Origin: Utricularia gibba
Taxonomy: Eukaryota; Plantae; Magnoliophyta
Assembly: GCA_002189035.1 (NCBI GenBank)
Contig: NEEC01000011.1
Coordinates: forward strand, 1-64,000
Reading direction: 5' to 3'
Length of the DNA: 64,000 nt
Every line of letters begins with the position of its first letter. Position 1 is the first letter of the stretch. Below, one piece after another: positions 1-57,285 of the stretch. Position numbers and translations under genes: made by a program. Below the pieces are notes generated by a model. The model saw only the letters and a list, made by a program, of their open reading frames with translations. It did no database searches and was not told the origin of the DNA.

Positions 1-3000
1 GTGTGCCACGAGGGCAAGAGGGGTTTTCACGTGGCACCGACGCGCGCGCCGCTGCACGCACGTTGACAACCGATGGCGTGCCGCATAAAGAAGAAAAAGA
101 AAAAGAAAAAAAAAAAAAAAAGGGATGCAACACGAGGACTTCCCAGGGGGTTAGAAAATTCGGTGTGCCACGAGGGCAAGAGGGGTTTTCACGTGGCACC
201 GACGCGCGCGCCGCTGCACGCACGTTGACAACCGATGGCGTGCCGCATAAAGAAAAGAAAAAGAAAAAAAAAAAGGGATGCAACACGAGGACTTCCCAGG
301 GGGTTAGAAAATTCGGTGTGCCACGAGGGCAAGAGGGTTTTCACGTGGCGACGCGCGCGCCGCTGCACGCACGTTGACAACCCGATGGCGTGCCGCATAA
401 AGAAGAAAAAGAAAAAAAAAAAAAAAAGGGATGCAACACGAGGACTTCCCAGGGGGTTAGAAAATTCGGTGTGCCACGAGGGCAAGAGGGGTTTTCACGT
501 GGACCGACGCGCGCCGCTGCACGCACGTTGACAACCCGATGGCGTGCCGCATAAAAAGAAAGAAAAAGAAAAAAAAAAAAAAAGGGATGCAACGAGGACT
601 TCCCAGGGTTAGAAAATTCGGTGTGCCACGAGGGCAAGAGGGGTTTTCACGTGGCACCGACGCGCGCGCCGCTGCACGCACGTTGACAACCCGATGGCGT
701 GCCGCATAAAGAAGAAAAAGAAAAAGAAAAAAAAAAAAAAAGGGATGCAACACGACTTCCCAGGGTTAGAAAATTCAACGAGCAAGAGGCATCCGACGCG
801 CGCGCTGCACGTTGACAACCCGATGGCGTGCCGCATAAAGAAAAAAAAGAAAAAGAAAAAAAAAAAAAGGGATGCAACACGAGGACTTCCCAGGGGTTAG
901 AAAATTCGGTGTGCCACGAGGGCAAGAGGGGTTTTCACGTGGCACCGACGCCGCCGCTGCACGCACGTAACGGAAAAAAAGAAAAAAAAAAAAAAAAAAA
1001 AAAAGGGATGCAACACGAGGACTTCCCAGGGGGTTAGAAAATTCGGTGTGCCACGAGGGCAAGAGGGTTTCACGTGGACCGACGCGCGCCCGCTGCACGC
1101 ACGTTGACAACCCGATGGCGTGCCGCATAAAGAAGAAAAAGAAAAAGAAAAAAAAAAAAGGGATGCAACACGAGACTTCCCAGGGGGTTAGAAAATTCGG
1201 TGTGCCACGAGGGCAAGAGGGGTTTTCACGTGGCACCGACGCGCGCGCGCTGCACGCACGTTGACAACCCGATGGCCGCATAAAGAAAAAAAAGAAAAAA
1301 AAAAAAAAAAAAAGGATGCAACACGAGGACTTCCCAGGGGGTTAGAAAATTCGGTGTGCCACGAGGGCAAGAGGGGTTTTCACGTGGCACCGACGCGCGC
1401 GCCGCTGCACGCACGTTGACAACCCGATGGCGTGCCGCATAAAGAAGAAAAAGAAAAAGAAAAAAAAAAAAGGGATGCAACAGGACTTCCCAGGGGTTAG
1501 AAAATTCGGTGTGCCACGAGGGCAAGAGGGTTTTCACGTGGCACCGACGCGCGCGCCGCTGCACGCACGTTGACAACCCGATGGCGTGCCGCATAAAGAA
1601 GAAAAAGAAAAAGAAAAAAAAAAAAAGGATGCAACACGAGGACTTCCCAGGGGGTTAGAAAATTCGGTGTGCACGAGGCAAGAGGGTTTTCACGTGGCAC
1701 GACGCGCGCGCCGCTGCACGCACGTTGACAACCCGACAAAAGAAGAAAAAGAAAAGAAAAAAAAAAAAAAGGATGCAACACGAGGACTTCCAGGGGTTAG
1801 AAAATTCGGTGTGCCACGAGGGCAAGGGGTTTTCACGTGGCACCGACGCGCGCCGCTGCACGCACGTTGACAACCCGATGGCGTGCCGCATAAAGAAGAA
1901 AAAGAAAAAGAAAAAAAAAAAAAGGGATGCAACACGAGGACTTCCCAGGGGTTAGAAAATTCGTGTGCCACGAGGGCAAGAGGGGTTTTCACGTGGCACG
2001 ACGCGCGCGCCGCTGCACGCACGTTGACAACCCGATGGCGTGCCGCATAAAGAAGAAAAAGAAAAAGAAAAAAAAAAAAGGGATGCAACACGAGGACTTC
2101 CCAGGGGTTAGAAAATTCGGTGTGCCACGAGGGCAAGAGGGGTTTTCACGTGGCACCGACGCGCGCGCCGCTGCACGCACGTTGACAACCCGATGGCGTG
2201 CGCATAAAGAAGAAAAAGAAAAAAAAAAAAAAAAAAAAGGGATGCAACACGAGGACTTCCCAGGGGGTTAGAAAATTCGGTGTGCCACGAGGGCAAGAGG
2301 GGTTTTCACGTGGCCCGACGCGCGCGCCGCTGCACGCACGTTGACAACCCGATGGCGTGCCGCATAAAGAAGAAAAAAAAAAAAAAAAAAAAAAAAGGAT
2401 GCAACACGGACTTCCCAGGGTTAGAAAATTCGGTGTGCCACGAGGGCAAGAGGGTTTTCACGTGGCACCGACGCGCGCGCCGCTGCACGCACGTTGACAA
2501 ATGGCGTGCCGAAGAAAAGAAAAAGAAAAAAAAAAAAAAGGGATGCAACACGAGGACTTCCCAGGTTAGAAAATTCGGTGTGCCACGAGGGCAAGAGGGT
2601 TTTCACGGCACCGACGCGCGCCGCTGCACGCACGTTGACAACCCGATGGCGTGCCGCATAAAGAAAAAAAAGAAAAAGAAAAAAAAAAAAGGGATGCAAC
2701 ACGAGGACTTCCCAGGGGTTAGAAAATTCGGTGTGCCACGAGGGCAAGAGGGGTTTTCACGTGCACCGACGCGCGCGCCGCTGCACGCACGTTGACAACC
2801 CGATGGCGTGCCGCATAAAGAAGAAAAAAAAAAAAAAAAAAAAAAAAGGGATGCAACACGAGGACTTCCCAGGGGTTAGAAAATTCGGTGTGCCACGAGG
2901 GCAAGAGGGTTTTCACGTGCACCGACGCGCGCCGCTGCACGCACGTTGACAACCCGATGGCGTGCCGCATAAAGAAGAAAAGAAAAAGAAAAAAAAAAAA

Positions 3001-5440
3001 GGGATGCAACACGAGGACTTCCCAGGGGTTAGAAAATTCGGTGTGCCACGAGGGCAAGAGGGTTTTCACGTGGCACCGACGCGCGCGCCGCTGCACGCAC
3101 GTTGACAACCCGATGGCGTGCCGCATAAAGAAAAAAAAAAAGAAAAAAAAAAAAAAGGGATGCAACACGAGGACTTCCCAGGGGGTTAGAAAATTCGGTG
3201 TGCCACGAGGGCAAGAGGGTTTTCACGTGGCGACGCGCGCGCCGCTGCACGCACGTTGACAACCCGATGGCGTGCCGCAAAGAAGAAAAAGAAAAAAAAA
3301 AAAAAAAAAGGGATGCAACACGAGGACTTCCCAGGGGTTAGAAAATTCGGTGTGCCACGAGGGCAAGAGGGTTTTCACGTGGCACCGACGCGCGCGCCGC
3401 TGCACGCACGTTGACAACCCGATGGCGTGCCGCATAAAGAAGAAAAAGAAAAAGAAAAAAAAAAAAAGGATGCAACACGAGGACTTCCCAGGGGTTAGAA
3501 AATTCGGTGTGCCACGAGGCAAGAGGGGTTTTCACGTGGCACCGACGCGCGCGCCGCTGCACGCACGTTGACAACCCGATGGCGTGCCGCATAAAGAAAA
3601 AGAAAAAGAAAAAAAAAAAAAGGATGCAACAAGGACTTCCAGGGGAAAATTCGGTGTGCCACGAGGCAAGAGGGGTTTTCACGTGGCACCGACGCGCGCG
3701 CCGCTGCACGCACGTTGACAACCCGATGGCGTGCCGCATAAAGAAAGAAAAGAAAAAAAAAAAAGGGATGCAACAAGGACTTCCCAGGGTTAGAAAATTC
3801 GTGTGCCACGAGGGCAAGAGGGTTTTCACGTGGCACCGACGCGCGCGCTGCACGCACGTTGACAACCCGATGGCGTGCCGCATAAAGAAGAAAAAGAAAA
3901 AGAAAAAAAAAAAAAAGGGATGCAACACGAGGACTTCCCAGGGGTTAGAAAATTCGGTGTGCCACGAGGGCAAGAGGGTTTTCACGTGGCACCGACGCGC
4001 GCGCCGCTGCACGCACGTTGACAACCCGATGGCGTGCCGCATAAAGAAGAAAAAGAAAAAGAAAAAAAAAAAAAGGGATGCAACACGTGGACTTCCCAGG
4101 GTTAGAAAATTCGGTGTGCCACGAGGGCAAGAGGGGTTTTCACGTGGCACCGACGCGCGCGCCGCTGCACGCACGTTGACAACCCGATGGCGTGCCGCAT
4201 AAAAAAAAAAAAAAAGAAAAAAAAAAAAAAAGGGATGCAACACGAGACTTCCCAGGGGTTAGAAAATTCGGTGTGCCACGAGGGCAAGAGGGGTTTTCAC
4301 GTGGCACCGACGCGCGCGCCGCTGCACGCACGTTGACAACCCGATGGCGTGCCGCATAAAGAAGAAAAAAAAAAAAGAAAAAAAAAAAGGGATGCAACAC
4401 GGACTTCCAGGGGTTAGAAAATTCGGTGTCCACGAGGGCAAGAGGGTTTTCACGTGCACCGACCGCGCGCCGCTGCACGCACGTTGACAACCCGATGCGT
4501 GCCGCATAAAGAAAAAGAAAAAAAAAAAAAAAAAAAGGATGCAACACGAGGACTTCCCAGGGTTAGAAAATTCGGTGTGCCACGAGGGCAAGAGGGTTTT
4601 CACGTGGCACCGACGCGCGCGCCGCTGCACGCACGTTGACAACCCGATGGCGTGCCGCATAAAGAAGAAAAAGAAAAAAAAAAAAAAAAAAAGGATGCAA
4701 CACGACTTCCCAGGGGTTAGAAAATTCGGTGTGCCACGAGGGCAAGAGGGTTTTCACGTGGCACCGACGCGCGCGCCGCTGCACGCACGTTGACAACCCG
4801 ATGGCGTGCCGCATAAAGAAAAAAAAAAAAGAAAAAAAAAAAAGGGATGCAACACGAGGACTTCCCAGGGGGTTAGAAAATTCGTGTGCCACGAGGGCAA
4901 GAGGGTTTTCACGTGGCACCGACGCGCGCGCCGCTGCACGCACGTTGACAACCCGATGGCGTGCCGCATAAAGAAAAAAGAAAAAGAAAAAAAAAAAAAA
5001 AGGGATGCAACACGAGGACTTCCCAGGGGTTAGAAAATTCGGTGTGCCACGAGGCAAGAGGGTTTTCACGTGGACCGACGCGCGCCCGCTGCACGCACGT
5101 TGACAACCCGATGGCGTGCCGCATAAAGAAGAAAAAGAAAAGAAAAAAAAAAAAAAGGGATGCAACACGAGGACTTCCCAGGGGTTAGAAAATTCGGTGT
5201 GCCACGAGGGCAAGAGGGTTTTCACGTGGCACCGACGCGCGCGCCGCTGCACGCACGTTGACAACCCGATGGCGTGCCGCATAAAGAAGAAAAAGAAAAA
5301 AAAAAAAAAAAAAAAAGGGATGCAACACGAGGACTTCCCAGGGGTTAGAAAATTCGTGTGCCACGAGGCAAGAGGGGTTTTCACGTGCACCGACGCGCGC
5401 GCCGCTGCACGCACGTTGACAACCCGATGGCGTGCCGCAT

Positions 5441-12696: not shown

Positions 12697-13023
12697 AATT
12701 GGTGTCGCGCGACCAAGTGACTCATGCGTCGTGCTCCCTGGTCCGTGAAGCATAACTTTCAGACCGCTTTGATCCGCGTGAAGCACCGCGCATCGTTTCG
12801 AAGCTCCTTCCGAGCCCGACGCACGGGGGCTCGCTTGGTGGAGCACGAAACGATGCTGCGTCCCTCGAAACGCAGGACGCCGAGGTAGGATGGGCATGTT
12901 GGCATCTTGAGACTAGAAAATTCGGTGTGCCACGAGGGCCAGAGGGGTTTTTACGTGGCACCGACGCGCGCGCCGCTGCATGCACGTTGACAACCCAATG
13001 GCGTGCCGCACAAAGAAAAAAAA
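12697..13023 (-). other. 5S rDNA non-transcribed spacer: 217-bp gene-proximal part absent from the satellite, plus a ~100-bp part shared with it and a terminator remnant
   Basis: 12914-13010 (TAGAAAATTCGGTGTGCCACGAGGGCC...GCGTGCCGCA) matches the satellite spacer segment with a few substitutions. 12697-12913 is a unique GC-rich sequence. Confidence 0.85.
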
Positions 13024-14829
13024 GTTGAGAGTAATTTTCAATTCACTGATCAAGCTGTATCTCAGCAATTTATGATATGATTTTCAATAACATCATGTCC
13101 AAGAGAGAGTTGATTCGCAAAAAAAAAAAAACAGAAGGAAAAGAAAAGAAGAAGATGAGAAGAAGAGAGAAAAGGGCTGAATGGTTGGAACAAGCCACAA
13201 AACTGAAAGAGGAGTTTCTTGGAGTACGAAAATCAAAGGATAAGCATGGCATATTTTTTTGATGGATGCTCACTCCTTATTACCCATAAAATGGAGCCTC
13301 TAAACGAATTTCCCACCTATCCAAGCTCCTGCCACCCTACAACACAAGAAAAAGACCTCATGATTGCGCAAGCTTGCTGAAACCAGTAGACCACTTGCGC
13401 AAGTTTACTGACTCACCTACATTCAGGTATTGAGTGAACCTTTTCATTTTATCCTCCTCTTATGGATTTCTCTTGTTGAGCATACAAAGTGACACCTGTG
13501 AGGAGTGAATACGTGCAAGGGGAGCTAGTGTATGATATTGCATTGAATAACTTATGCATATTGTTGCCTTAACTCTATTTGCAAGCTACTATTTTGAAGG
13601 AAAATGCCTTGAACAATTGCTTGAGGACAAGCAAACATTTAAGTGTGGGGGAGTTGATAAGTGATTTTGTGTCACTTATATTTATGCTTTTTAGGACTCA
13701 CTTAGATGGGTTTTGCATTCTTTTTATTTTATGAGAATTTTGTATCTTTCATATACTTTGATCTTTTTGGAAGGAAAGTGTGTTTTGTGATTTTTCAGGA
13801 TAATTTTGGCATAATTTGGAGGATTTTCGAGCTACTTTAATGGAGGCTAAGATTTGGTCTATCTAGATAAAGACTCGGTCAAAGATTCTCGGATAAGATA
13901 AGATTAGCATCTTATCTTAGAAAAGTTGGATCTTATCCTAGAAGATTTGTATCAAATCTTAGAAGATCCGAATAGAAGATTTGATGTGAGCCCATCAAGA
14001 AAGCCCGACGAGTCCCCACCATTATATAAAGATCGAAACACGAAGATCAACCAGGAGGGAGAGTCAAGTGGATGACCAGATAGTCAATTTAGGGTTTAGA
14101 GCCGAGTCTAGCATGTTTTGGATGTCTTCCCTTTCGATTTTTATCAACTTTTGTTGTTTAGAGTCGAGCATGCGCGTGTGAGCGCTTGCGGCTGAGGATC
14201 TGCTGTGAAGCCTTGCTTGCGCAAGTCCTGCGCACGTGACTATCTTACTATGTTTTTTAGCATTTAATTTGAGGTCTGATTCTATTTTTCGCAATGTTTT
14301 CTTTACCAACGTGATCTTTAGTACCATATAGCCCTAAGGGAGTGTGGGAGAATCAAAGGTTGGCCTCAAGCACTTAAGGAGAAGAGCTCAATCGGACACC
14401 GTTGGTAAGGCACATTTTGTCTAATCTATCTGCGAGGTGACAGGTGCAGGGGTTAGATTTGGGTATGGGGAAAATATGGATTATCACAAGAGGTGAAATG
14501 GCTCTTTTGGCGTGGTTGATTCCATAATCCCACTAAACGAGAGACGATGCTATAACGGTTACCGAGTAGTACTATTTTAGAATAACACTCCCAGAACTTG
14601 CGCAAGCAGGTCAGTCTTCAAAGTTTGCACACACGCAAGAGAGAGTTTCAAGTAAGGTGGATCTTAGATCTAAGTCCACTTTTCTTATTGTATTCAAAAC
14701 AAATCTTTCTTTTGTTTTTAGTCTTTTTAAATCTTTGTTTTGAAAGTAAAATTCCAATAACAATTTCCCGTGGATACAATCTTATTTTATTAATTTGATG
14801 GTTTCTATTCATTTGCAGAATCACCATCA
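13024..14829 (+). mobile_element. 3' portion of an Athila-type Ty3/gypsy element: 3' non-coding region, PPT (13641-13654) and 3' LTR (13655-14829)
   Basis: TTGAGGACAAGCAAACATTTAAGTGTGGGGGAGT is followed directly by TGATAAGTG..., and the LTR ends ...ATCACCATCA. The LTR is homologous to the copies at 41372-41933 and 41972-43109. Confidence 0.8.
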
Positions 14830-17800
14830 ATGATTCGAATTAAAAAAAAATAAAAAATTATAAATATTAAATAAATATATATGATTTCAAACACTTTTCT
14901 CATACACTTACACGTGATAAGTGGAATGCTTGAAAAATCTTCTCAAACAACCCTTCTTCAACCAAAACCCGAATCGACGGTTTCGGTTGGAACCGCGGTT
15001 GTAGTTCGAATCGAGTTCACCCCTAGGTGAATTCATATGTGCTAAGCTATGGATTAAAATGCAATAGAAGTCTTTCTCGGGTTCGTGCAGGAGAAGGTGA
15101 TGAATCCAGCATTGATTCGGTTTAGCGCAGGTCCAGCCCCTATTGTTTTGCGGAGTCTGACCAATTATCCGGCCCATACACATTTCTCAGGACGCGCTCT
15201 ATTTTCTTGGATTCGAGGAGTCGCCGCGCCTTTTGAATATTTGGAGGTGCTCCCGCCTGGCTCACGATAGCCATGTCAGTGACTCTACGATGGTTCGTTG
15301 CGCAGTTAGCGGATGGGGATGGGGAATGTTCTGTGGATAAAATAAATTCAGGGAGTTCCCAGTTCATTATTCGCCTAAATGTCAACCAGAAAGAGGGTGC
15401 GTCCGGTTCGCCGTGGCCCCGACGGCAGCGCCTTTGAGAAATGGTTCTTCTCTCTCCGTTTCAATTACTGCACACCATTCTTCGCATGAGATTTCCGTGG
15501 TAGCTTTGCTCGTATGAGGTTTCATTATGCTATTTCCTTGAAATGTGTGATTGGTTTGTATATTGTACTGTAGTGGAAACTGTGGGCTCTCTGTGGCGAT
15601 TGCTTTGGCTGGTATGCACGAGTGTGGATCTCACGAAAATGCAAACAAGAGAACAAAGATCGATGATATTGGCCAGAGGATTCTGGATCAACCCAGATCG
15701 GCTTTTCGTTTCTTCATGTATATCTTCTCCGTTTTTCGTGCATGTTTTACTTGTCTAGTTTGTCTGTGGAGGTGGCTGTTTATTTCCAGCTTCAGCCATT
15801 TATCGCTTGAGTTGAATAGGATTTTTGCATCCTTAATTCTTGGATACAAAAATAGGATTTTGCAATTCCCTGTTGAGTTGGAGACCCTCAATCGGGTTAA
15901 TTGTTGGTCATACAGGGAAGAGTATTTGAGGATAAGTGACGAAAGAAATGAAATTGAGGTAGACAAGAGAGGGTGTGAGTTATGGAAAGGCATGTCAGAC
16001 GAGGTACACAGTGTTCAGTGTTTTACTACCAATTTATACAGTCAGTCTTCTTGAATTCCCGCTTACTTCACTTATTGTCTTCCTTAGGAGAGACAGCCAT
16101 ATCTTCTGAAGGCCCATAAACTGGACTCTGCCTGGATGAAACTTCTGCGGGATGAGGAACATGAGATGAGATGGGTAATCAATATACGTGACCTTGAGAA
16201 CCCATATTATATTGATATGATTGTTCATGTTCCAGGTTTCAAATGCATTTGTTCGTGGGTTCCTAGGCAGATGATGAAGCGGATTCAGCGGAGGCCGGGA
16301 AACCTCCTGAGGTAGCATCCCCTGAGTTCTGCACGTCTTCTGACTACAGTGGTGGTGTTGGCTCCTTGTGGTTCTTCTCTGATACAACTTGGGCAACTTG
16401 AAGGGTTAGTTCTAAGTAGTTCTCAGGTTTGAAGACGGAGCAGAGCGTGAGCCTTGTGAAATTGGAGTGTCATTTTGGCTACTTTTCGCAAGTGATTTTG
16501 TAGCCTACCTCTGCTTTTTGAGCTGGTGTCATTTTTGATAGGGCACGTTTAGTTAAACGGAAAAAAATGAAATGGTATAATTTTATGTTGTGTGATTTTA
16601 AGACTATAAATTATTCATAAAATGATATGTTTTATATATTGGAATAAAAGAACTTGATTAGATGTATGCTAGTTTTGCTGATGGTTTCATAAATGGAATT
16701 ATTTTGTAATTTATCTTTTTATCTTTTAATTTTTATTAAAATTAATGTATTGTTTTCAATACATTTTTAGAATAAAATTTCATATTCCTTCTCTCGAGTC
16801 TAGTAATCTTTCTTATGTGTTTAAAATTTTTGTCTCGAAAAATAGTTTCTAAAAGATAATTCCTTCATATGACTCGAAATAATGATAAAAAATCATTTGG
16901 TATTAGTTTTATCCATTATATCCATTCAAAATATATAGAGATTGTCTCCAATTATGTGAAGAAATTGGAGGTACTTAATAGCAAAATTAAAAAGCAATTT
17001 CTCATCCAATTAATTTCTCTATCTAGAAGTTTACCCTCTAACAAGGAATTTAAGATATATTTTTTAGTAATTTTTCAAATAAAAGATATCCACGAACTCA
17101 TTACAAGCTTCAAAACGATATACCACAAATCACATTTGCATCAAGATATGAGAGTCTTCCAAAGGGTGCCTTCAAGAAGGAACTCAACAAAATGAACTCA
17201 AACACAAACTTCGAAACAATTGAATTAAAGATGGAAAGTATTTAAAGGATGGTGATAGTGATCGCCATCAAGAAAAAAACTATTTAGGGTGCGTTTGGTT
17301 GCTGGGTTTAGGTGGGTTGCGACGTGGGTTTAGAGATAAACCCACGTTTGGTACGTGGGTTTCATACGAGTAAAAATAAACCCGGCGGGAACCCGCTGAG
17401 TTGGGAGCTCGACGCTTCCAATTTTGCCCTCGCGTGAACCACATTTGAACGTAGATCTACAAACCAGACTTTGTTCGTGATTTGCCGGTGGCGTCGCGTG
17501 TTCTTTGGGCGCAAAAAGGGTGGGTCTTTAGGTAAGTGTGCTTTATGTTCTTGGTGGGTTGGTCCATGGTAGCACTGCATAAGGCCAACCACGGCAACAC
17601 CACATAATGGGTTTTTATCTGTGATTTTCCAATTTCTGAATCTGTGGTGTTGTGTGTGTGGATTTATTTTGCTCGATTTTTGCTACTGTTGAGGGGACAT
17701 GGATTTTTTCATGAAGGGCCATGTCATCTTGAGTGCGGCCGTGGCAGTTTTAACCGAATACTTGGTGTAAATGAATGTGTTAGTAAGAGTACGAATGAGG

Positions 17801-27562: not shown

Positions 27563-28278
27563 ATGTTGAAAATTATTTCCAAAATCGTATTAGTGTCTTG
27601 TGTGGTGACGGGGGCGGCAAGTATACTTCCAATGAATTTAAAACCTTTCTGGCTGATAATGGTATACTTCGGTAATCCTCTTGCACTTATCACTCAACAC
27701 AAAATGATGTTTTTGAAAGGAAACATTTACACATTAATGAAGTTGCAGTTTTTATGATGATCAAGGTTGGAATACTAGCTTATATGTGGACTGAAGCATT
27801 TCATATTGTAGCTCGACTTATAATTTTGCTACCATCTGCTCGGCATAAGCAACATTATCCATATCAACAACTATTCAATAAAAATCTTGATTATTCTTCG
27901 CTTCCCATTCAGGGTTGTTGTGCTTATATTCATGTTCCTAGCAAATTCAGGAATAAATTATCTCTGAAGGCAATTAAAGCAATTTTCATTGGGTATGATG
28001 ATGTCAAGAAGGGTTATAGATGCTTTGATATCATTAATCGGAAGTTATTAATATCATGTGATGTGTCGTTTGATGAGAAATGTTTTCCCTTTTTAGAGCC
28101 TTGGAATTTCGCTAACTCCTCATCATCAATTGGATCCTTCAATGCTCCATCATCAATTGAAAGGAATTTTTCAAATCCATTTAACGATGCAATGGAAGAG
28201 TCAACCCACAACACTCAAAATGCAAACCCTCCTATGTCTAATGATGCAATGGAAGAGTCAGCCTATGTCAGTTGTTAG
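27563..28278 (+). mobile_element. Ty1/copia integrase fragment (degenerate)
   Basis: DGGGKYTSNEFKTFL..NGI, W.EAF...LI..LPS, GCCAYIHVP...KL..KA.KAIFIGY....KGYRCFD...DVSFDE; contains stops and frameshifts. Confidence 0.82.
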
Positions 28279-34564: not shown

Positions 34565-34715
34565 GTGGTGTCTGTTAATTTCTCTGTTGTTAATGCATTT
34601 ACGTTCCTTTGCATGTCCACTTGAACCCCTTGATTTGGAGATCGAGAGGACTGAAAAAGTACTAAGAAAGAAGCACAAACAAAGTTAGCAAGAGGCTAAG
34701 TTGAGAGCCGTAGAG

Positions 34716-37700
34716 ATGGCTGACAACCCACCAAACAACCAGCAGCTTGTAAATATTTTGGAGAAGACTATTGGAGAGTATGAGTCACCAGATCATACCT
34801 ACCAAGGGCATTGTATCACCTTTCCTACAGCAGCAGTTAATTTGGAGTTGAGGCCAGGAACCCTTGCTCTGTTTCCTAAGTATTATGGGAACAAGAATGA
34901 GGACCCGCATATGCATATTGATGATTGTATTGCTGTTGGAGCTGTGCTGCGACCCAAGGACGTGACTGACAATGATTTACTATTTCAAGTCTTCCAATTT
35001 ACTCTTGAAGGACATGCCAAGACTTGGTTCAACACACTTGAACCAGGAAGTATAAGAAGTTGGATGGAAATGAAGAAAGCATTTTTAAATCAGTTTTTCC
35101 CTACCTCCAGAGCAGACGAAATTCGCAGCAAAATTGAAAATATTTTTCAGGATTATGATGAGCCTCTACATGAGTATTGGGGCAGGTTCACAACTCTCCT
35201 TTCGAGCTGTCCACATCATGGATTTGATAAATTGAAGCAGGTGAAATGCTTTTTGAAGGGCTTGACTGCTGCCCAAAGAGACAAGTTGGACTATGCTGCA
35301 CATGGGAATATGAGGACTCTTACCCCATCTGAAGGCTGGGAGAAAATTAAAGAAATGGTTGGACATTCAAGGCATTCTCAATTTCGATCCAAAGCCCAGC
35401 GACAATGAATGAGATGGGAGTACTAAGAGAAGATGAAGCAGCAAGAAATGACAAGGATATTGCTGAATTGAAGGATATGGTAAAAGGATTATTTCTTGTT
35501 CATGCTAAATCCATGCCTTGTGAAGTCTGTGGAATTTTGGGGCATACTCCTGATCATTGCTCCATGAAAGGAAATCTGGAAGAACCACTTGAAGGAGTGA
35601 ATGCAATGGGGTACATGAATAATAGAGTTGATTATTTCAGGCCCAAGAATGACCAGCGATTTGAGCCTATGAGGAGTCATCCCAATTTTAGCTGGAGAAG
35701 CACCAATGTTGAAAATCCACAACATCTGGGATTTAATCAAAAGCAGCAACCAGCTCAAACAATTTCGTTTCAGCAAGGGGAATAAGTATCAAAGCAAGCC
35801 TTATCAACCCCCACATCAGAGAGTCGACCAGCCAAGCACTTCGGGTGTTAAACCACCTCCTTCAACCGAAGAAATGATGAAGATGATGCTGGAAAATATG
35901 GCCAAACGTGACGCTGAACAAGCAAAGAGAGATGCTGAATCAGAGAAGATGATGAAGAGTCTTGAGAGGCAAATTGGCCAACTTGCTATAGAGCTCGCTG
36001 AACTGAAAGGAAATTCAGGGAAACTACCATCTCAGCCAAATGCCAATCCGAAAGCAAATATTTCTGCTATTGAACTTCGTGGGGGGAAGCAACTACCTGA
36101 CCGGAAGGCCCCTACAAGTCAAAGCAAAGTGGCTAAAGGTCCTGAAGTTAATTCGGAGGATAGGACACAAGGAAAAACAGCAAAGGAACCTGCTGTTGAG
36201 ATCAAGAGGACACCTCCTTTTCCTGGAAGATTACAAGCTCGAGCAAGGTAAGAAGAGAAGGACTCCATAATCTCAGCCTTAGACTCTGCGATGATCACAA
36301 TGAAGGCTGTAGATTATTTAAGGCAAGTGCCGAAAGGGATGAAAGTGTTGAAAAACCTGTGTAGTTCGAAGAGGAAGAGCAAGGATGAAGAAGTGATCAA
36401 AGTCAGTGCTCAAGTCTCAGCCTACCTGACACAGCAAATGCCAGAAAAATGTTCAGACCCTGGGACATTTTTTGTTCCTATCCAGGTAGGAACTAAATTC
36501 ATCAGCAAGGCAATGGCGGATCAAGGCACTTCAATCAACATGATGCCTTATGAAGTTTATTTGGCACTAGATTTGGAACCCCTCAGGCCAACAAACTTGA
36601 AGTTACAACTTGCAACCAGATCTGTGGCCATTCCGGAGGGCATTGCGGAAGATGTTCTTGTTAGAGTTTCTAACACCTGCTATCCTTGCGATTTTGTTGT
36701 TGTTAAAATGCCTCCATATAGGGTGAATGATAATACTTTAATTCTGGGATGCCCTTTCCTAGCTACTGCAAATGCTCAAATTGATTGTAGGAAAGGAGCC
36801 ATCACTATTGGTTATGCCGATGATATCTCTATCTTTAAGACCAATGAAGCTGAAAAGTTCCTTGATGATTTTGCACCTGTGACTGGAGTTGATGTCGTTG
36901 ATGAGCTGGTGGAGGAAGTTTTCGATGAAGACTAGCATGATATTCTTAAAATTTTTAAACAAGGAGTTGAGCTTGGAGAGGAGGAAGCTAAGCACATAAT
37001 TCTTGAATGTTTCATTGAAGATAAAGACTTGGTGAAGCTTGGAGAGGTGACTAGTGTTGCACCACCAGAATTGAAACCCTTGCCTTCACACCTCAAGTAT
37101 GCATTTATTGGTGACAATTCAAAGCCGGTGATTATTAGTGCTGATCTTTCTTTTGAAGAAGAGATGAAGTTGATGAACGTTCTCAAAGCTAACAGCAAGG
37201 CCATTGGCTGGACATTGGATGATATAACCGGAATTAGCTCTTTTGTCACCATGCATAGGATTTATCTTGAAGACGGAGCAAAACCGGTTAGACAACCACA
37301 GAGAAGGCTCAATCCTACCCTCATGGAGGTAGTGAAGAAGGAAATACAGAAGCTGTTGAAAGCTGGAGTGATTTATTCAATTTATGATAGCACGTGGGTA
37401 AGTCCTATCCACGTAGTCCCTAAAAAGATAGGAATTACAGTTGTCAAAGATGTTGATGGAAAGAAGGTGGTGACGCGAGTTCAGAATGGCTGGAGGGTAT
37501 GTATTGACTACAGGAAGTTGAATGAAGTCACAAGGAAGGATCACTACCCTTCGTGGACCAAATGTTGGACATGTTAAGTGGTAAAAGTTTTCATTTACCA
37601 GGTTGTTGTGGCACCGGATGATCAAGAAAAGACGACTTACCTGTCCCTTTGGCACCTATGCGTACAAGAAGATGCCATTTGGTCTCTGCAATGCCCCAGT

Positions 37701-39944
37701 GACTTTTCAAAGGTGTGTCACCAGCATTTTTTCGGATTATATTGATGATTTCATTGAAGTATTCATGGATGACTTTACTGTGCATGGGACTAGCTTTGAT
37801 GATTGTTTGAATCATTTGGAACTTGTGTTGAAACGTTGTTATGAAAAAGGATTTAGTTTTGAACTTTGAAAAATGCCATTTCATGGTGCGCCAAGGAATT
37901 GTACTTGGCCATGTTGTTTCTGCAACAGGTCTTATAGTAGATCCTGCTAAGGTAAGTATTATTTCTGGTTTACCATATCCACGTGGAAAGAGGAATTCGT
38001 GCATTTTTAGGCCATGTCGGATTTTACAGGAGATTTATTAAAGGTTTTTCTCAAGTTGCTCGACCACTAACCAATCTCTTGCAGAAGGATGCTGAGTTTA
38101 TTTTTTCAGATGAATGTAAGCATGCTTTTGGCACTCTCAAGGCAGCAGTGACATCAGCTCCTATCATACAAGCACCCAATTGGAGTGAGCCCTTCCATGT
38201 GATGACTGATGCATCCAACTATGCAGTAGGAGCTGTGTTAGGCCAGAAACTTGATGGAAAAGACACTGTTATCAGCTATGCTTCCAAAAACTTGGATAAT
38301 GCTCAAGCAAATTACACTACAACTGAGAAGGAGATGCTAGTTGTGGTATTTGCCTTGGAAAAGTTCAGAAGCTATTTCCTGGGCAACAAAGTGATTGTGC
38401 ACATAGACCATGCCGCCATCAAACACCTCATGTCTAAGAAGGAGACCAAACCGAGGCTTATGAGGTGGGTCTTATTGCTGCAAGAGTTCAATGTGGAAAT
38501 CAGGGATAAGCCTGGGAAGCTCAATGAAGTTGTAGATCACCTTAGCAGAATCGAGCAACCCATGGATGGTGTTCCAATTGTTGAAGAATTCCCAGATAAA
38601 CAACTCTGCGCAATTAAGGCTGATGCAGGGAAGACTAGTAAGCCATGGTACGCTGACATAGCCAATTATCTGTGCACTGGAGAGCTCGCATTGGACTTAA
38701 AGAGTTATGAGAAGCTGAAGTTGAAGAGTGAGAGTAAGCACTATTTTTGGGATGACCCCTATCTATGGAAAAATTGTGCTGATGGTGTTGTGCGACGCTG
38801 CTTGGCCGAAGATGATATTCAGCAAGTGTTGGCTTTCTATCATGCGTCTCCTTGTGGAGGGCACCATGGTCCTAACCGTACTGCCAAGAAGGTCCTAGAT
38901 TGTGGCTATTATTGGCCAACAGTTTTCAAAGATGCCAAGTCTTACTGTAAGAGCTGCGAAAACTGCCAAAGAACAGGGAACATCTCCAACCGCCATGAAA
39001 TGCCAATGCAGTCAATTGTTGTTCCAGAAGTGTTCGATGTGTGGGGTATAGACTTTATGGGCCCCTTTCCAAACTTTGATGGCTATGAGTATATTCTGGT
39101 GGCAGTGGACTATGTTTCAAAGTGGATGGAGGCAATTCCCACCAAGTCACAAGATACTCATTCAATCATACGTTTTTTGAAGAATAACATCTTTGTGAGG
39201 TTTGGAACACCCAAAGCCTTGATCAGTGATCGTGGAAGCCATTTCTTTAACAAGGCTATGGAGAGACTGCTGAAAAGCTATGGAGTCTAGTACAAGCCAT
39301 CTAATTCTTACCACCCTCAGACCAATGGGCAGGCAAAAGTTTCTAGTCGGGAGATCAAGCAAATTTTGGAAAAGACTGTGACTTCTTCTCGCAAGGACTA
39401 GAGCTCCAAGTTGAATGACACCTTGTGGGCAATTCACACAGCCTTCAAAGCCCCTATCGGTATGTCTCCTTTTCGTCTTGTATATGGTAAACATTGCCAT
39501 TTGCCCATTAAATTAGAGCAAAAGGCAAGATGGGCGATCCAACGAGTGAACTTGGAAATTCAAGGCAGTGGTGACTTCAGGAAGCTCCAACTTTCAGAGC
39601 TTGATGAGCTAAGACATGAGGCCTACATGAATTCAAAAATCTTCAAGGAACGCACGAAGCAGTTCCATGACCGCCAGATCTTGAGAAAGCACTTTGAACC
39701 TGGGCAAAAGGTATTATTATTTCAATCTAAACTCAAACTTCACCCACGTAAACTGAAATCTCATTGGGAAGGACCTTTTGTGATTAAACATGTGAATCCT
39801 AACGGTTCCATTGAGTTGTTTGATAGAGACATGCATAGCTCACTCACTGTGAATGGGCATAGATTGAAAGTGTTCCATGAGCTTATGATAGATGAAGTGG
39901 GACACCCTGTGGATGCTGTGGCATTCACTGAAGTTCCTCTTTGA
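34716..39944 (+). pseudogene. Disrupted Athila gag-pol (gag, protease, RT, RNase H, integrase); no matching 3' LTR found
   Basis: gag (EDPHMHI, AKTWFNTL, Y..RF..LL..CPHHG); protease (ADQGTSINMMP); RT (WRVCIDYRKLN, MPFGLCNAP, FMDDF); RNase H ([20 protein letters not shown]); integrase ([24 protein letters not shown]). There are multiple stops and frameshifts, the RT FLDGYSG segment is deleted, and the D35E Glu is replaced by Lys. Confidence 0.93.
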
Positions 39945-41371: not shown

Positions 41372-41933
41372 GATCCTTAGCCGCAAGCGCTTACACGTGA
41401 ATGCTTGACTCTAAATAAAAAAAGTTGATGAAAAACGAAAGGGAAGGAATCCAAAACATGCTAGACTCGACTCTAAATCCTAAATTGACTTTCTGGTCGT
41501 CTCCCTTGACTCACTCTGTTGATCTTCGCGTTTGGATTTTTATATAATGGTGAGGACTTGTCGGGCTTTCTTGATGGGCTCACATCAAATCTTTTATCTG
41601 GATCTTCTATGATTTGATACATATCTTCCAGGTTAAGATCCAAGTTTTCCAAGATAAGATACGAATCTTATCTTATCCGAGAATCTTTGGCCGAGTCTCC
41701 ATCCGGATAGACCAAATCTTTGCCTCCATCAAAGTCAACTCGAAAATCCTTTAAATTATGCCAAAATTGTCCTGAAAAATCACAAAACACATTTTCCCTC
41801 CAAAAAGATCAAAGTGGTATGAAAGATATAAAATTCTTCTAAAAACATAAGAAAAGTGGGATAAAAAGAATGTAAAACCCATCTAAGTGAGTCTCAAAAA
41901 GCACAAATATAAGTGACACAAAATCAACTATCA
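41372..41933 (-). mobile_element. 5' half of an Athila-type LTR (truncated), same subfamily as 13655
   Basis: Reverse complement is colinear with 13655-~14200 (TGATAGTTGATTTTGTGTCACTTATATTT... to GCGCTTGCGGCTAAGGATC). Confidence 0.8.
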
Positions 41934-43465
41934 ATTGACATCGCCATGAATCCAATTTTTTGAAAAAAAATTGATAAGTGATTTTGTGTCGGTCCAAAAT
42001 ATATTCTTCCACTACTCTTGAGTGTTTTTTTACTTATCTTAGACTCCATTTTCTCATTATTCTCAATTGATTTTACATCTTTCACACTACTTTGATCTTT
42101 TTGGAGAGAAAGTGTATTTTTTGGATTTTTAGGGTACTTTTGGATCAATTTGAGGAGAAATCAAGACCCACCAAATTATGGACTTGATGGGCCACGAATC
42201 TCAGCCCAAGACTCGGTCAAATGATGAAGATTTGGTCCAAGATTCGTGGATAAGATAGAGATATGAAGAAGATTTCGAAGATTTGGATAAAAGATTTGGA
42301 TAGAAGACCTTATCCAAGCACATCGAATAAGCTAAATATGAAGACTTGAATCTACTTTCCTATAAATATCCCACCCTCTCAACCATTAGAGACGTCTTTG
42401 ACCACTTTTACTTTGAATCTTTCCTATTTTCATGTTTGAGTCGAGTCTGCGCGTGTAGGCGCTTGCGGCTGAGGATCTGCGGTGAAGCCTTGCTTTCACA
42501 AGTCATGTGCGTGTGACTATTTTACTATGTTTTTAGACATTTAAATTGAGGTTTGATTCTATTTTTCGCAACATTTTCTTTATCAACGTGCTCTTTAGTA
42601 CCATATAACCCTAAGGGAGTGTAGTAGAATCAAAGGTTGGCCTCAAGCACTTAAGGAGAAGAGCTCAATCGGACATCGTTGGTAAGGCACATTCTGACTA
42701 ATCTGTCTGCGAGGTGTGAGGTGTAGGGGTTAGATTTGGGTGTAGGGAAAACATGGGTTATCACAAGAGGTGAAATGGCTCTGGTGGCATGGTTGATTCC
42801 ATAATCCCACTAAACGAGGGACGATGCTATAACGGTTACCGAGTAGTACTATTTTAGAATAACACTCCCAGAACTTGCGCAAGCAGGTCAGTCTTCAAGG
42901 TTTACACACACAAGTTTGGTCGAGTTTTGAGCAAGATGGATCCCAGGTCCAATGCCACTTTTATTCTTGTTTTTAAAACCAAATCTTTCTTTTGTTTTCG
43001 GTCTTTTTGAGTCTTTGTTTGAAAAGAAAATTCCAATAAAAATTCCCTGTAGATACGATCTTATTTTATTACTTCGACGGTTTCTGTTCACTTGCATAAA
43101 TCACCATAAAAAACCAAACATGTGGAAATCAATCACCACTTTGTCAGAGAAAGAATTGAAGACAGCGAGATCAATTTGCATTATATATGCAATGAGGAAT
43201 AGCTGACAAATATATTGATCAAGTCATTGCCAAAGCCATGTTTTGAATACCTAATAGGCAAATTGCGCAAACATGGATTGGCTCATTTGAGGGGGCATGT
43301 TGAAATTAATACATAATGGTATTATTGTAATTTAGTGGTATGTTTTTGTATAAATATACCAAATGTAATCCACGCCTCTAGTTCTTGACGTCAGTGTGCT
43401 CTCTATATTTTGTGTTCAATCTTGGATTTACTAGCATTTATCTCATTCATTATCAAAGTTTAACA
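41934..43465 (+). mobile_element. Ty1/copia 3' remnant: RNase H (41934-41971 and 43110-43290, split by the solo LTR), PPT and 168-bp LTR (43298-43465)
   Basis: IDIAMNPIF.EK | TKHVEINHHFVRERIE...ILIKSLPKPCFEYL...LRG, then GAGGGGGCA followed by TGTTGAA...TTTAACA. Confidence 0.78.
41972..43109 (+). mobile_element. Athila-type solo LTR inserted into a copia RNase H region
   Basis: TGATAAGTG...ATCACCATAA; the 3' half is highly similar to 14190-14829. Flanks AAAAT/AAAAC match 4/5. Confidence 0.8.
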
Positions 43466-43576: not shown

Positions 43577-46567
43577 TTAGACAACGTACACCATCCCGAC
43601 TTCAAGCAGCGACGCCGGCGGGACCTTCAGGGCGACATCGTTCCCACGGCAATTCCGGCGGAGGAAATTGTATCCGAAATCAATCGCCACCCTCTTCAGG
43701 AACGAGGATCCTTTTTTCGTCTGCACATGGGAATTCCCAACAATGAACGCTGTCCCCGCCTGCTGCGCCTCGTGTAAATCTCCTAGCTCATGTTCCGCCC
43801 CCGACGGGATCCCTATCCCACGCCCTTGGTCTTCATCATCTTCAATCGCGAACCTAACCCTTCTCTCGGGTACCACCAGTTCTTCGTTAAGGCTCTCAAT
43901 CGATGAGAAGCCCTCTGATCCCACGCTCACCGGTTCTAAATTGCTGTCGGAGAAAGTCACGGTTCCGACCACCGCGAACCTGCACTCGCCCGCCAGTGAT
44001 GCACGGGAAGAAGATCCGCCGCCGATGTCACTACAATCGGGGTTGATGATGCCATGAGATTTGCGCCAATCATAGCGAATGAAATCTGCCAGTTTGCTGA
44101 TCAGCTCCGATTCGAATGAATCCACATCTTGATGAACATCTCGGTAACCGTATCTCACGATGCACCGGTAGGACCGATGGGATGCCGGTCCCACGCGGCC
44201 TACAAGATACCTCTCCGCTGGAAGAACATATGGAACAGGGACAGACTTGATGCATACAAAGACAAGAACGCGATGAAAGGCCGGAAGATTGGTGACAAAT
44301 CGGGAAAAGTTGGCAGGAACTCCTGATGTCAAGTCTGTGAAAACAATGCCGATACCTGGTACGCGAGCGATACCCAGACTTGGTTCTAACGCAAGGAGCC
44401 ATTCAAGAGAAACCTTATTGTGGAGATCGAATTCATACTTCTTGATCGTTGCATAGTGCCAAGTGAACATCACACTCACGAGGACGAGGGCCAGGAGGAT
44501 TGGGAGCCAAGCTCCGTCTTTGAATTTGGTCACAGAAGCCGAAAAGTAGAGCAACTCGATTGATCCAAAGAAGAGGAGGAAGCACAGAGCCAGGACTGGA
44601 GGTTTGTGCCAACACAGGATGATTACCAAAGAAGTCAGGCATGTGGTAACCATCATTACGGCCATAACTGCCAATCCTATAGCAACAAACAGGAGGAAAG
44701 GTAAAAACATGCAGTGTGTATATATAAGCCATTGCTTATCTTTTGCGTACTGATACTAAGTAGTTGCCTGTTCAGGTACCTGATGCATTTCCCATGTGCT
44801 TGACGTCTCGAAATCCAATAGTCACAGCGATGCAGAGTATCATGAGCAACCAGTTGATCTCTGGTATATAAATCTGGCCATGGATTTTGTCGGAGGTGTG
44901 GATAACTTTGACCTTTGGGAAGCATCCGAGGGATTGGCTCTGGTTGATGATGGAGAATGTGCCACTGATTATCGCCTGGCTCCCGACAACGGAAGCAAGT
45001 ATTGCAACTCCAAGGACCGGCCATCTAACAGACTCTGATCCACAAGAAAGACATGTAAGATCATCTGAGTTTTGCTTCATCATAATTTTTCTTGAACACA
45101 CACTTGCCTGGAACTGAAACATAGAAGCCAATGTTCTGAATCATGTCATGATGTTGTGATAAGTATGCAGCTTGCCCCAAATACGCTAATGTCAATGCAG
45201 GATATACCAGGAACGTGAAAGCAATCTGCATTATAAATAAAACACACTACCATTCATCAGGTTTCAATAAACTCTCAGATGATTCATGGCTGTGCCAGCA
45301 ACTTCACCTGAATTGCTGCATAGGAGAAGTGGCCAAGATCAGCAAACATGGCTTCAGAGCCTGCAAGAAGGGAAAAGATCAAGACATCCTTCGGATATTC
45401 GTGGAATAGGGCTAGAAGAAACTAGTTCATTTACCAGTTATGCACAAGAGGATTCCTCCTAGAGACATCCATCCGCCTTTTCTGGTTTTCTTCAGAAATC
45501 TCACCATATAGAGGGGGGATAGCGCCTTGTATATTTGGGGATTCCATTCGATGATGTTGTACAATCCCAGTGCACTGATAGACAACAACCAAGTGAAGAC
45601 AATCGGCGCAAAGCAGGTGCCAATTCTGTGGGTACCATAGTGTTGCAAGGCGAATAAGCAAACTAATATGAAGCAAGTGATTGGGAGCACTGCATCTGAA
45701 AATAGAAGAGAATGAATTTGATAACCCAAGGCACCTACAATGTTGAAGGCAAAGAGTTTGAGATGGAAATAGGCTTACATTGGTGGTGATCCTTTGACAT
45801 TGATAACTCGAGCCCAGAAACAGCAGAGAAGACTACAAATATGGCATGGTATACATATGCGGCTTCAATTGATGATGAATGCAATGTGAAAAATGATGAG
45901 CAGATGATTAAGGGCGTTACCAGATATTGCAGGAGTTAACAGTCCATCTCCAATCACCATACAAGTACCAAGGAGAACCAAGAGCAGCAAAGCAATGTGC
46001 AAAAACTTGTGATTCTCCAACAGCATCTTCACTCTTGAGCGGCTCGTCGTCTCCGTTGGGGGCCTAGTTTATATGTGGAAAGCTCCTCATCTGCAACTTG
46101 CCGGTTGGGTAGCAGACTGACTTTGGTGTGTCTGCATATGAGAGAATACAGAGCAAAAGTCCCCCTGAAATTGGAGTGAAATACTGTTCAGAATACAACA
46201 TAGAATATACTTAGCTTCGAGATTCTGGACACCCATTTCACCTTCCCATTGTCGTCTGCTCGAAGCACAATAAACACGTATTTGAACAGAGGAACGAGGG
46301 TTAGTGTCCAGAAGACGAAAGAAAGAACGCCAAATATCTCCTCATTCGTTTCCGAGTGATGAATATCTTCAGCAAATGTGCTTCTGTAGACGTAGAGAGG
46401 GGAAATACTGAGGTCCCCATAGACTACTCCAAGGCTCTGGTAAGCTAAAAACAGTGTAGTTCTCCAAGAATCCTCCTGGAATTCCAAACCCAGTTTGAGT
46501 GAAATGAAGCCAACAAGCTCAACAACAGAGGAATCATACAAACCTTTGACCCTGAGGAGAGATCCAT
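43577..46567 (-). CDS. KUP2: HAK/KUP/KT potassium transporter, KUP2/KT2-like; 9 exons (46544-46567, 46242-46475, 45921-46164, 45779-45832, 45435-45695, 45308-45360, 45108-45225, 44780-45034, 43577-44676); frameshifted as assembled
   Basis: [64 protein letters not shown]-terminal [17 protein letters not shown]. Three 1-bp deficits in exons 2 and 3 give TGA at 46087-46089. Confidence 0.9.
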
Positions 46568-54039: not shown

Positions 54040-57000
54040 ATGAGGATCTTCGATATTTCCTGCACGCCAGAGCACCGGCATTCCTCCGAATCGGAGAAGG
54101 ATTGCTACAGCTATTCGGCAGCGCTTTCACAAATTGAGTGCACGGCCAAATCACTCGAGAATCATCCCCCATCCCAGCCCTTGTCCGATTCCTTTTCCAC
54201 AGATCTTAACCTTGCAGTTGTTCACCTCATTCAGCAAGCTCTTCCTCTTCCTAACTCAGTCAAACTTCTTGTCTGGAAGCTGAGTTACCGAATCTGGAAC
54301 GCATGTGTTGACCTCTCAAATGCCTCATCTGCCAAAGCCTGCGACGAACACGCAAAGCTCCGACAAGCCGCAGCGCAGATGTTACTGTTTGCTGTTGATG
54401 TGGTTGGAGTTCCTTCTCCGACCTTCAAGACAGCTTTGCTTTTCTATAAAACCGGATGGATGTGGTTTGAGCTGAAAAGGCTCGATTTAGCCAGCAATTG
54501 CTTTGATAAGGCTACGGATCTTGTGTCGAACACGGAAAGCATCTCGGTGACGGATAATGATGAGCGCAAATTGCTCTTTGATCTCAATCTTGCTAGGTCA
54601 AGAGTTGCCTGGGAAATTTCTGACCGTGATTTGGCGATTGCTATGTTGAACAGATCGAAAAATGTTCTGTTTGGAATTGCGAGTAACTATAGTGCCCTGG
54701 CCGATCAATTTTTAACAATTGGAAAAGCTCTGCTATCAACTGGCGATTCTTCTGTCCTGAATGATGCACTGAATTTGATGAAGGATGCGCTTGATTTATG
54801 CGAGAAGGGATTGGGTGTAGTAAAAAGAACTGATGAGACTCTGAATTTGAAGGAGTTGCAAAGGAGGACTTTGAGATTCATTGCAGTTGCGTATCTGCAG
54901 GGTGACGATTTTGAGAACGTGCTTAAGTGTGTGAACGTTTTGAGAGATGTTGAGAATTCTGTGGGTCATCACCCAAGTTTGAGTGTCCTGGCAATGAAGG
55001 CATGGCTGGGTTTAGGTAGATATGATAAGGCTGAGAAGGAGTTGAACGGAGTGGTGGCAAACAAGGGAATACCAGAAGGTGTATGGGTGTCCGCAATGGA
55101 GTCATATTTCCAGGCAGCTGGTGCCACGGGCGTGGACACCATCAAAGGAGTGTTTATGGGACTATTGGATTCTTGTCGAGTTGGTGCAGGGGCAACAATT
55201 AAACTGATAAATAAGGTTATTGGAAATGGGCTGAACAGCGGCGATAGAATGAATGTGATAGCTAGGACTGTTGCTGACATGGTTTCGGATGAGAGAATAC
55301 AGGCCCTATTTGCTGGAGAAGTTGCTTCTAATGAAAGAACGGCAATGTATGCTCTTCTCTGGAATTGGTAAGCACCAGCAAACTTTGTTGTCCCGGACAA
55401 TAAATGACAGGAATTCTCATTTTCAGCAGGTTATTGCTTTTTTGTGTGGTGCTGTATTCCAGTGAACACTTTGCTTCTTTTGTTTTTTGTTTTTTTTTTC
55501 TGACAGCGCAACGGAGTTTTTCAGATTGAAATGTTATGACCTGAGCGCAGAGATGTTTGAAAAATCTTTGTTCTTTGTACCTAATAGAATAGAAAACAGA
55601 ACGTTTAGAGCAAAGGGATACAGAGTTCTCTGCCTATGCTACCTGGGGTTATCGAAGCTTGACAGAGCTGAAGAATATATTAATGAAGCTGACAAGGTAA
55701 ATATGAACTAGCCAACGCCGATTTATGATCTGATACGTTTATATTGTTTGAGATGATGAGATGCCAAAACGCATTGACTGTTCAATTTGCTTCTGCAGTT
55801 AGAGCCCAATATTGCCAGTGCCTTCCTCAAGGTATCATCATCTTCATCAAAACTGAGATGAAATAGCAGGTGCATCTAGATAATTTGTTGACTTATTGAG
55901 CTTTGCAGTTCAAGGTTTACTTGCAAAAGAAGGAGCATGACCGCGCTACTGCACAGATTCAAGCAATGCCTTGCTGTTTGGACTTCACTCTTGATTTCAT
56001 CTCCCTTTCAGCCCATGAAGCAGTGGCCTGCGGCGCACTTCCAGTTGCTGTTTTTGCTCTGGATTACCTCTTGAGCTTCTTTTCCTCAGGAAAACAAATT
56101 GCTACAAACGAGGTTGTGCTAGTTCGTACCTTAGTCACCATTTTGACTCAGGATCCAGGCAACGATATTGATGTCATCAAACACATGAAAAGAGCTCATT
56201 CTAGGCAATTAGAGATTGGACCAGGGCAGTTTTTTGGGAAATCTGAGGTTGGGCGAAGAGAAATAAACTGGCTTGCAGCAAATGCTTGGAACTTTGGAGT
56301 GACAAGTGGGCAGAAGAAGCGTTATGATACATCATCAGAGTTTTTCATTTTGGCATCGAAGTTTTTTGAAATTGTTTGTGACGCAGAGACAAAACAGAAC
56401 AGCGTAATGGTTTGCAAATCTCTTATACTTGCAGTTTCCGCTAGGATTGCTGATGAGAATCATAGAGATAGAGCCTTGCAAGAATCTGAAGTCAGACAAA
56501 GCATTGAGACGTTGGGGAGAGCGGGGAAGGTGGCGAAATTATCTTCACATGTGAAAAATGAAATCTTCTTTTGATCAAGCGAATTGCATTGCACAGCATC
56601 TGTGTTTATTATTTTAATTACCTTATTATTCTTGCAGATACTGAAATCACACTCATCTGGCATTCGGAAGAGTGATGATGAGTCTGCAGCAATCGAGCCT
56701 ACCTTCATCTTCCTGTACGCATGGACTGCGCTTGATCTCTACTCCAGACTCAGTGATACGGTGGAGCAACAGTTCCAGGTTGTGAAAGAGCTCGCGAGCT
56801 CCAAACCATTAACAAACCCAAAACACTTGCTCTACATAGGTTTGGAGGCGTCACAAGGAGCACGATCGAACCCTGAAGTAGCCATGCTTGCTCTCAAAGT
56901 TTGCCTTTCCGCCCTCGTTGCTTCCCCTACTCCCGACTACCCAAGTATCGCTCGGATCCTCAGGGAGCTGATTTGTAATACCACTGTTCACGTTGGAGAT

Positions 57001-57285
57001 CCCGGCGATGACTCCATCTCTGAAATGTACAAGCAAGGGTACAGCATGATGGTGGGACTGAGAGAAGGTGAATACCCCACTGAAGAAGCCAAGTGGCTAG
57101 CCATGACCGCGTGGAACCGCGCTGCACTTCCTATGAAACTAGGGCAAATCGATACTGCTAAGAAGTGGATGAAAATAGGTTTGGAAATAGCGTTGAAGAT
57201 TCCAGGCATGGATAGCTATAGATCGCGAATGGAGGATTATTTACTGGGACTGAGTTCCCAGACGGAGAAGATCACGCAACAGTAG
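54040..57285 (+). CDS. ZIP4: Meiotic TPR-repeat ZMM protein ZIP4/SPO22; 5 exons (54040-55367, 55507-55696, 55799-55831, 55909-56529, 56638-57285), 939 aa, intact
   Basis: [49 protein letters not shown]...[38 protein letters not shown]. All introns are GT-AG and the spliced frame is open (2820 nt). Confidence 0.95.

Follow-up and report, generated by a model that had tools for sequence, protein, structure and literature searches.

What kind of DNA is a tandem array in which every unit carries the end of a 5S rRNA gene and only one carries the whole gene, and how does such an array come into being? The question is raised by the first 13 kb of a 64,000-nucleotide stretch of the Utricularia gibba genome (contig NEEC01000011.1, positions 1-64000 of the forward strand; the whole stretch is herein referred to as the window), at whose left end a ~160-bp repeat related to 5S ribosomal DNA (5S rDNA) borders on unrelated sequence. 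The array is very probably real 5S rDNA-derived satellite DNA, and with similar confidence (a probability of about 0.8) we regard it as a young satellite family that was derived from the organism's own 5S rDNA by one rearrangement and was then amplified.

Tandem Repeats Finder (TRF) reports a 160-bp period at 985-12607 (74.3 copies, 89% matches); at 1-776 it detects the repeat again, with a period of 153. When a 158-nt consensus built from clean monomers is used as a BLAST query, 82 consecutive copies are returned in 1-12607 (a count that is approximate for the part before position 9399, as discussed below), together with a partial copy at 12914-13024. The copies stand head to tail over at least 12.6 kb, and on the left side the array continues past window position 1. 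Read on the minus strand, each monomer consists of 5S nt 90-120, a T-rich run of 23-32 nt and ~95 nt of spacer; sequence comparison and BLAST thus bear out the original prediction, which was made from the letters of the window and described the monomer as the 5S gene tail, an oligo-T run and ~100 bp of spacer. Its further statement that a promoterless unit had been amplified to at least 12.6 kb also holds, with 82 copies from which 5S nt 1-89 are absent. The features that define the array are the following:

1-12607, minus strand: satellite array of ~82 monomers of ~160 bp (TRF, BLAST segmentation with the 158-nt consensus, monomer alignment).
12454-12607, minus strand: final monomer of the array, shared with a full 5S unit as that unit's 3' tail, terminator and proximal spacer (BLAST match spanning consensus 1-158; sequence).
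12424-12483, no strand assigned: example of the satellite-specific junction, in which the proximal spacer ends directly against 5S nt 90, with the join between 12453 and 12454.
12608-12913, minus strand: segment missing from every monomer, comprising 5S nt 1-89 (box A, the intermediate element and most of box C) and 217 bp of upstream spacer (sequence comparison).

The monomers give no 5S match in Rfam even at E values up to 10, and their homology to a 5S gene and its spacer is found within the organism's own genome, where both the adjacent full unit and the majority unit in sequencing reads match. A functional 5S array has a full 120-nt gene with its internal control region in each unit; here, there is one gene among ~83 units. 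Within the well-resolved 3.2 kb that adjoin unique sequence, the units are clean and 158-164 bp long. Individual monomers depart from the consensus by 0-4 substitutions, almost none of them common to several monomers, and the observed/expected ratio of CpG is 1.39 in the array versus 0.57 in the flank. Because substitutions are so rarely shared and CpG is not depleted, the array appears to be young or actively homogenised.

The origin of the unit can be read from its junction. Excision of 12608-12913 from the full unit yields the monomer junction (GGGG(G)T joined to TAGAAAA) exactly, and a comparison of the two breakpoints reveals no microhomology, not a single base being held in common; both points had been predicted. 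The junction is found 72 times in the window, always with identical breakpoints. Hairpins in the spacer near the junction (an 8-bp and a 10-bp stem) were considered as a cause of the breakpoint and rejected, as the fold is not unusual (folding z -1.9).

The original prediction turned on the presence of this junction in sequencing reads, and short reads do contain depths that fit it. Reads were compared with the window in the form of Logan contigs, which derive from a 31-mer graph and whose depths do not equal copy numbers. In X1, a 2013 short-read run of the window's organism (95 million letters), a contig of depth 55.6 begins exactly at 12454, the first base common to the satellite and the gene-bearing unit, and covers their shared spacer. 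The gene-bearing path is represented by a 445-nt contig of depth 31.5, which ends 30 nt into shared sequence on each side, exactly as expected of a 31-mer graph at a fork. The X1 bins 12415-12449 and 12450-12484 have depths of 15.3 and 75.3, and a 60-nt junction unitig at 12424-12483 with a depth of 26.8 (~27) reproduces both values exactly, given masking up to 12429; the sum of 26.8 and 31.5 also approximates the 55.6 of the shared spacer. From these bins, the X1 plant independently supports both forms at a junction to gene unit ratio of ~0.85 : 1, and on the same grounds the junction is not an assembly artefact and the satellite exists in the organism. In X3, a 2021 run, the junction bins are covered, but the run is too fragmented to interpret.

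Beyond the source organism, only 5S-gene-sized shares of the query were matched by other organisms in the run index, and a second plant (X8) covers only the 5S gene, so that the satellite family seems restricted to its source organism as far as the run index reaches. Metagenome scans with the junction and with the spacer core gave no matches. The X8 dataset (DNA) is peculiar in its own right: its depths at 12586-12696 add up to 10^7-10^8 over just the 5S gene, it comprises ~190,000 short contigs, and it is hugely enriched for 5S variants whose spacers are unrelated to those of the window.

Is the gene-bearing unit that abuts the array its progenitor, as was originally proposed? A full unit does lie at the array edge, but its letters mark it as a decayed relative of the source and the satellite matches the majority unit in reads. 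Three features make up this edge:

12579-12696, minus strand: full-length 5S rRNA gene, the only one in the window and decayed (Rfam RF00001, 99.6 bits, model 1-120).
12697-12913, minus strand: distal (upstream) spacer of the full unit, from which ~79 bp of the majority spacer are missing between 12875 and 12887.
12914-13023, minus strand: outermost partial copy of the proximal spacer, at the array edge (BLAST, 94.6% identity; alignment).

The edge gene carries two substitutions (nt 34 C>U and nt 45 U>A), has lost one C from a C5 run and is preceded by T rather than C at -1; at nt 34 and 45 (12663 and 12652), reads carry the letters that are conserved in plant 5S RNA. X1, X3 and X6 (a run labelled plant metagenome) all disagree with the edge unit at 12652, 12663, 12697, 12721, 12739 and 12940, sites that include -1 (12697), -25 and -43, and all have an extra G behind 12602; at 12652, 12663 and 12697 the other letter has essentially the whole depth. 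Within the distal spacer, the 445-nt contig of X1 fits 12586-12875 and resumes at 12888, bridging the interval by ~91 letters absent from the window, which has 12 there, and the edge copy has therefore lost ~79 bp; X3 and X6 have loose contig ends at 12874-12886. The majority 5S unit hence measures ~545 bp (445 - 60 + ~160) and comprises the gene, an oligo-T terminator, a ~95-bp proximal spacer and a ~296-bp distal spacer, which corrects the ~465 bp first estimated from the shortened edge copy. The tail of the satellite has the G5 run of the majority gene in 13 of the 17 well-resolved junctions, and at 12940, 12952 and 12981 the satellite likewise carries the majority letter. As the informative sites place the satellite with the majority unit, the edge unit is a decayed sibling and not the progenitor. 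The outermost spacer copy differs from the satellite consensus by 6 substitutions in 111 nt, of which 3 are CpG-type transitions, and at 12940, 12952 and 12981 reads give the consensus letter and not that of this copy. A homogenised array bordered by decaying, unhomogenised edge units is the usual picture. As a separate observation, the distal spacer contains a 10-nt perfect inverted repeat (CATCGTTTCG / CGAAACGATG; 12781-12872, minus strand), at which a sub-threshold match to the S-adenosylhomocysteine (SAH) riboswitch (18 bits, E 1.4) was taken as chance.

We hypothesize that, in a single rearrangement, the proximal spacer came to end directly against 5S nt 90, with no microhomology involved. 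Two routes to such a join are indistinguishable, as the resulting junction and array edge would be identical: a deletion between two units that removed the distal spacer together with nt 1-89 of the following gene, or a duplication in tandem, within one unit, of the stretch that begins at nt 90 and includes the whole proximal spacer. Of the proposal that one deletion created the monomer, the one novel junction therefore stands, and deletion becomes one of two routes. The internal control region of 5S genes lies roughly at nt 50-97. The ~160-bp unit, which retains its terminator, lacks box A and the intermediate element, and of box C it has just the final few bases; it should therefore not recruit TFIIIA/TFIIIC nor be transcribed by Pol III as a 5S gene. 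By analogy with satellites in general, unequal exchange and gene conversion would be the most likely means by which the unit multiplied and stayed uniform. Homogenisation would be weak at the array edge, and one gene-bearing unit and one spacer copy may have escaped it there and decayed. We consider a cellular function of the array improbable.

The left and larger part of the array differs from the remainder in the quality of its sequence:

1-9398, no strand assigned: part of the array with an error-like consensus (3.7 scattered 1-nt deletions per monomer, apparent period ~153).

Over 122 core columns, deletions number 3.74 per monomer before 9399 and 0.0 after it, a sharp step, whereas substitutions (~1-2 per monomer) run across the whole array with no step at this position; a few seemingly irregular units are monomers with many scattered 1-nt losses. 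The step looks like a consensus-polishing boundary of the assembly and not like biology, as is typical of unpolished long-read consensus. We accordingly rejected two subfamilies with periods of 153 and 160 bp, as their difference consists of scattered 1-nt deletions that end abruptly at ~9399 and reflects consensus error.

Several observations weigh against a satellite born by one rearrangement. The copy number and monomer lengths before 9399 are approximate owing to the poor consensus, and the 153-bp period is not trustworthy; the evidence covers one array edge only, with the left end and the main 5S locus lying outside the data; the X1 junction unitig is inferred from binned depths and is not a listed contig; and unequal exchange as the route of amplification is assumed. 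X6 has the gene and both spacers at depths of 412-1393 and nothing on the junction, which may reflect polymorphism, another species or sister taxon, or simply a hole. Moreover, the ratio of ~0.85 would also fit ordinary units with one extra copy of the segment each. This last point leads to the rival that is more serious than an assembly artefact, namely ordinary spacer sub-structure, in which working units would carry extra copies of tail, terminator and spacer and the array would be a local expansion inside a functional 5S locus; a segment duplication in canonical units had been named at the outset as the finding that would overturn a satellite. The direct contact between the array and a gene-bearing unit is in keeping with this, as is the closeness of the junction depth in X1 (~27) to that of the gene unit (31.5), which is expected with one extra copy per unit. 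However, 82 gene-less copies follow one another in a row, and in X6 the shared spacer (412-417) is no deeper than the gene (465) and the junction is lacking, so that units without an extra copy exist. Overall, we consider sub-structure of this kind unlikely.

An assembly artefact, by which noisy long reads of an ordinary 5S array would have been mis-collapsed into a false short repeat, might be suspected from the excess of error-like 1-nt deletions in the left 9.4 kb with its sharp step at ~9399, and tandem repeats are often misassembled; yet the 72 junctions share the same breakpoints, the 3.2 kb next to unique sequence consist of clean 158-164-bp units, and the 2013 short reads fit a junction-specific unitig, which together make an artefact extremely improbable. 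A functional satellite that selection and not drift has preserved, whether centromeric, B-chromosomal or giving rise to regulatory small RNA, is only slightly less improbable. The unit is of mono-nucleosome size, and in switchgrass a 5S array reportedly serves as the centromere (a finding ascribed to Yang et al. 2018, cited in PMC12692304); 5S-derived repeats also mark the B chromosome of Plantago lagopus (PMC6410184, PMC6210368). Against selection stand the position of the array end, 30 kb from ordinary genes, the lack of satellite words in the RNA runs of the organism and the failure to see the satellite in X6. Two further candidates were rejected. A retrotransposon that had split a larger 5S array is at odds with the rest of the window, as no 5S-related DNA was found by searching 13024-64000. 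An array of Cassandra, a 5S-carrying terminal-repeat retrotransposon in miniature (TRIM), needs a 5S domain with boxes A and C inside its long terminal repeats (LTRs), and the monomer holds only 5S nt 90-120, the rest matching the organism's 5S spacer in reads, although no search was aimed at the primer-binding site.

That satellites can be born from 5S rDNA is already known, as the original prediction had stated for rDNA-derived satellites in general, and the 160-bp family adds another case. The closest structural parallel is found in the beetle Tribolium freemani, in which gene-less arrays of spacer and part of the 5S gene lie inside 5S clusters (PMC11202950). There, too, spacer and a gene piece form satellite-like arrays that adjoin gene-bearing units; the insect sequence is unrelated, and its arrays are interleaved within 5S clusters, whereas one array edge is seen here. 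Among plants, PLsatB is a B-specific satellite of Plantago lagopus with a reported 325-bp monomer that makes up ~3% of the 1B genotype (Kumke et al. 2016, as described in PMC6410184, PMC6210368 and PMC11202950). PLsatB likewise consists of fragments of the 5S gene and spacer, and Plantago is a lamiid, as is the window's organism in a single-gene tree. Its 325-bp monomer differs from the 158-164 bp found here, although 325 is close to two units and a dimer is possible, both families being compared by description only; its share of ~3% of the 1B genotype is also a misfit to a junction whose depth in X1 barely matches that of the 5S genes. The spacer sequence of the 160-bp family was not found in published paper texts, and the family may be identical to some already described one.

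Among animals, 5SHindIII-DNA (HmaSat03) from the fish Hoplias malabaricus is a satellite derived from the 5S unit (Martins et al. 2006; PMC11369246). It combines part of the gene with spacer and has been amplified apart from the true 5S repeats, as proposed here, but it belongs to an animal and is pericentromeric. Its monomer is said to be ~360 bp and to keep most of the gene, in contrast to the 3' tail alone that is retained in the window. PcP190 of hyloid frogs shares both the 5S rDNA origin and, at ~190 bp, a monomer size similar to that of the 160-bp repeat (PMC11675491, PMC4201667); it differs in that 120 bp of it resemble the entire transcribed part of 5S, and it is old, present in many families and reported to be transcribed, whereas in the 160-bp repeat 31 nt of the gene remain and its range seems limited to one organism. 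Finally, satellites from the 35S intergenic spacer of plants such as tomato (Jo et al. 2009, cited in PMC10946416) illustrate the same escape of an rDNA unit piece from concerted evolution with the genes, followed by amplification as a satellite, their source being the 35S intergenic spacer and not 5S rDNA.

The 160-bp family leaves the knowledge of how rDNA-derived satellites arise unchanged. What it offers is satellite birth resolved to the base pair, with one junction, no microhomology, a recognisable source unit, intact CpGs and barely differing monomers, which could be used to illustrate models of how satellites originate and of weak homogenisation where arrays end. For annotation it is a warning: 5S probes or primers at the 3' end would give a signal from a gene-less array, and anyone estimating 5S copy number in this organism via the gene 3' end or the proximal spacer would arrive at almost twice the number. 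A more speculative extension, which we regard as doubtful, is that this lineage repeatedly turns 5S rDNA into satellites, that the 160-bp tail family is the youngest of several independent 5S-derived families and that it may vary between individuals, as it is seen in X1 and X3 but not in X6; if so, the genome would record successive satellite births from a single source locus, perhaps in connection with a supernumerary or otherwise unusual chromosome.

Where the array ends, it gives way to a repeat of another kind:

13024-13400, no strand assigned: flank without relation to 5S rDNA, formed by a dispersed repeat with many copies (in the low-coverage runs X1 and X3 its depth is multi-copy and variant letters occur).

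Beyond this flank, the window contains a ~1.2-kb repeat in two copies (13654-14830 and 41372-43110) that are 86-89% identical, partly direct and partly inverted, and ~27-28 kb apart. Remains of LTR retrotransposons occupy 34701-39944 (plus strand), with gag, RNase H, an integrase zinc-binding domain and an integrase core in a row, the order of the Ty3 type, and 27754-28278, where a separate frame has a retroviral-polymerase SH3-like domain. A KUP/HAK/KT potassium transporter (KT2-like) is represented by its last large exon at 43577-44710 (minus strand), an open frame of 377 aa; homologues of this exon reach at most 75% identity, and a single-gene tree places it among lamiid asterids on a branch 3-4 times longer than those of other lamiids, which could indicate a fast lineage, a relaxed paralogue or a pseudogene. 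Farther right, a ZIP4/SPO22-type meiosis gene (54040-57285, plus strand) begins with a frame of 443 aa that holds SPO22 and TPR domains and continues in two more long open frames.

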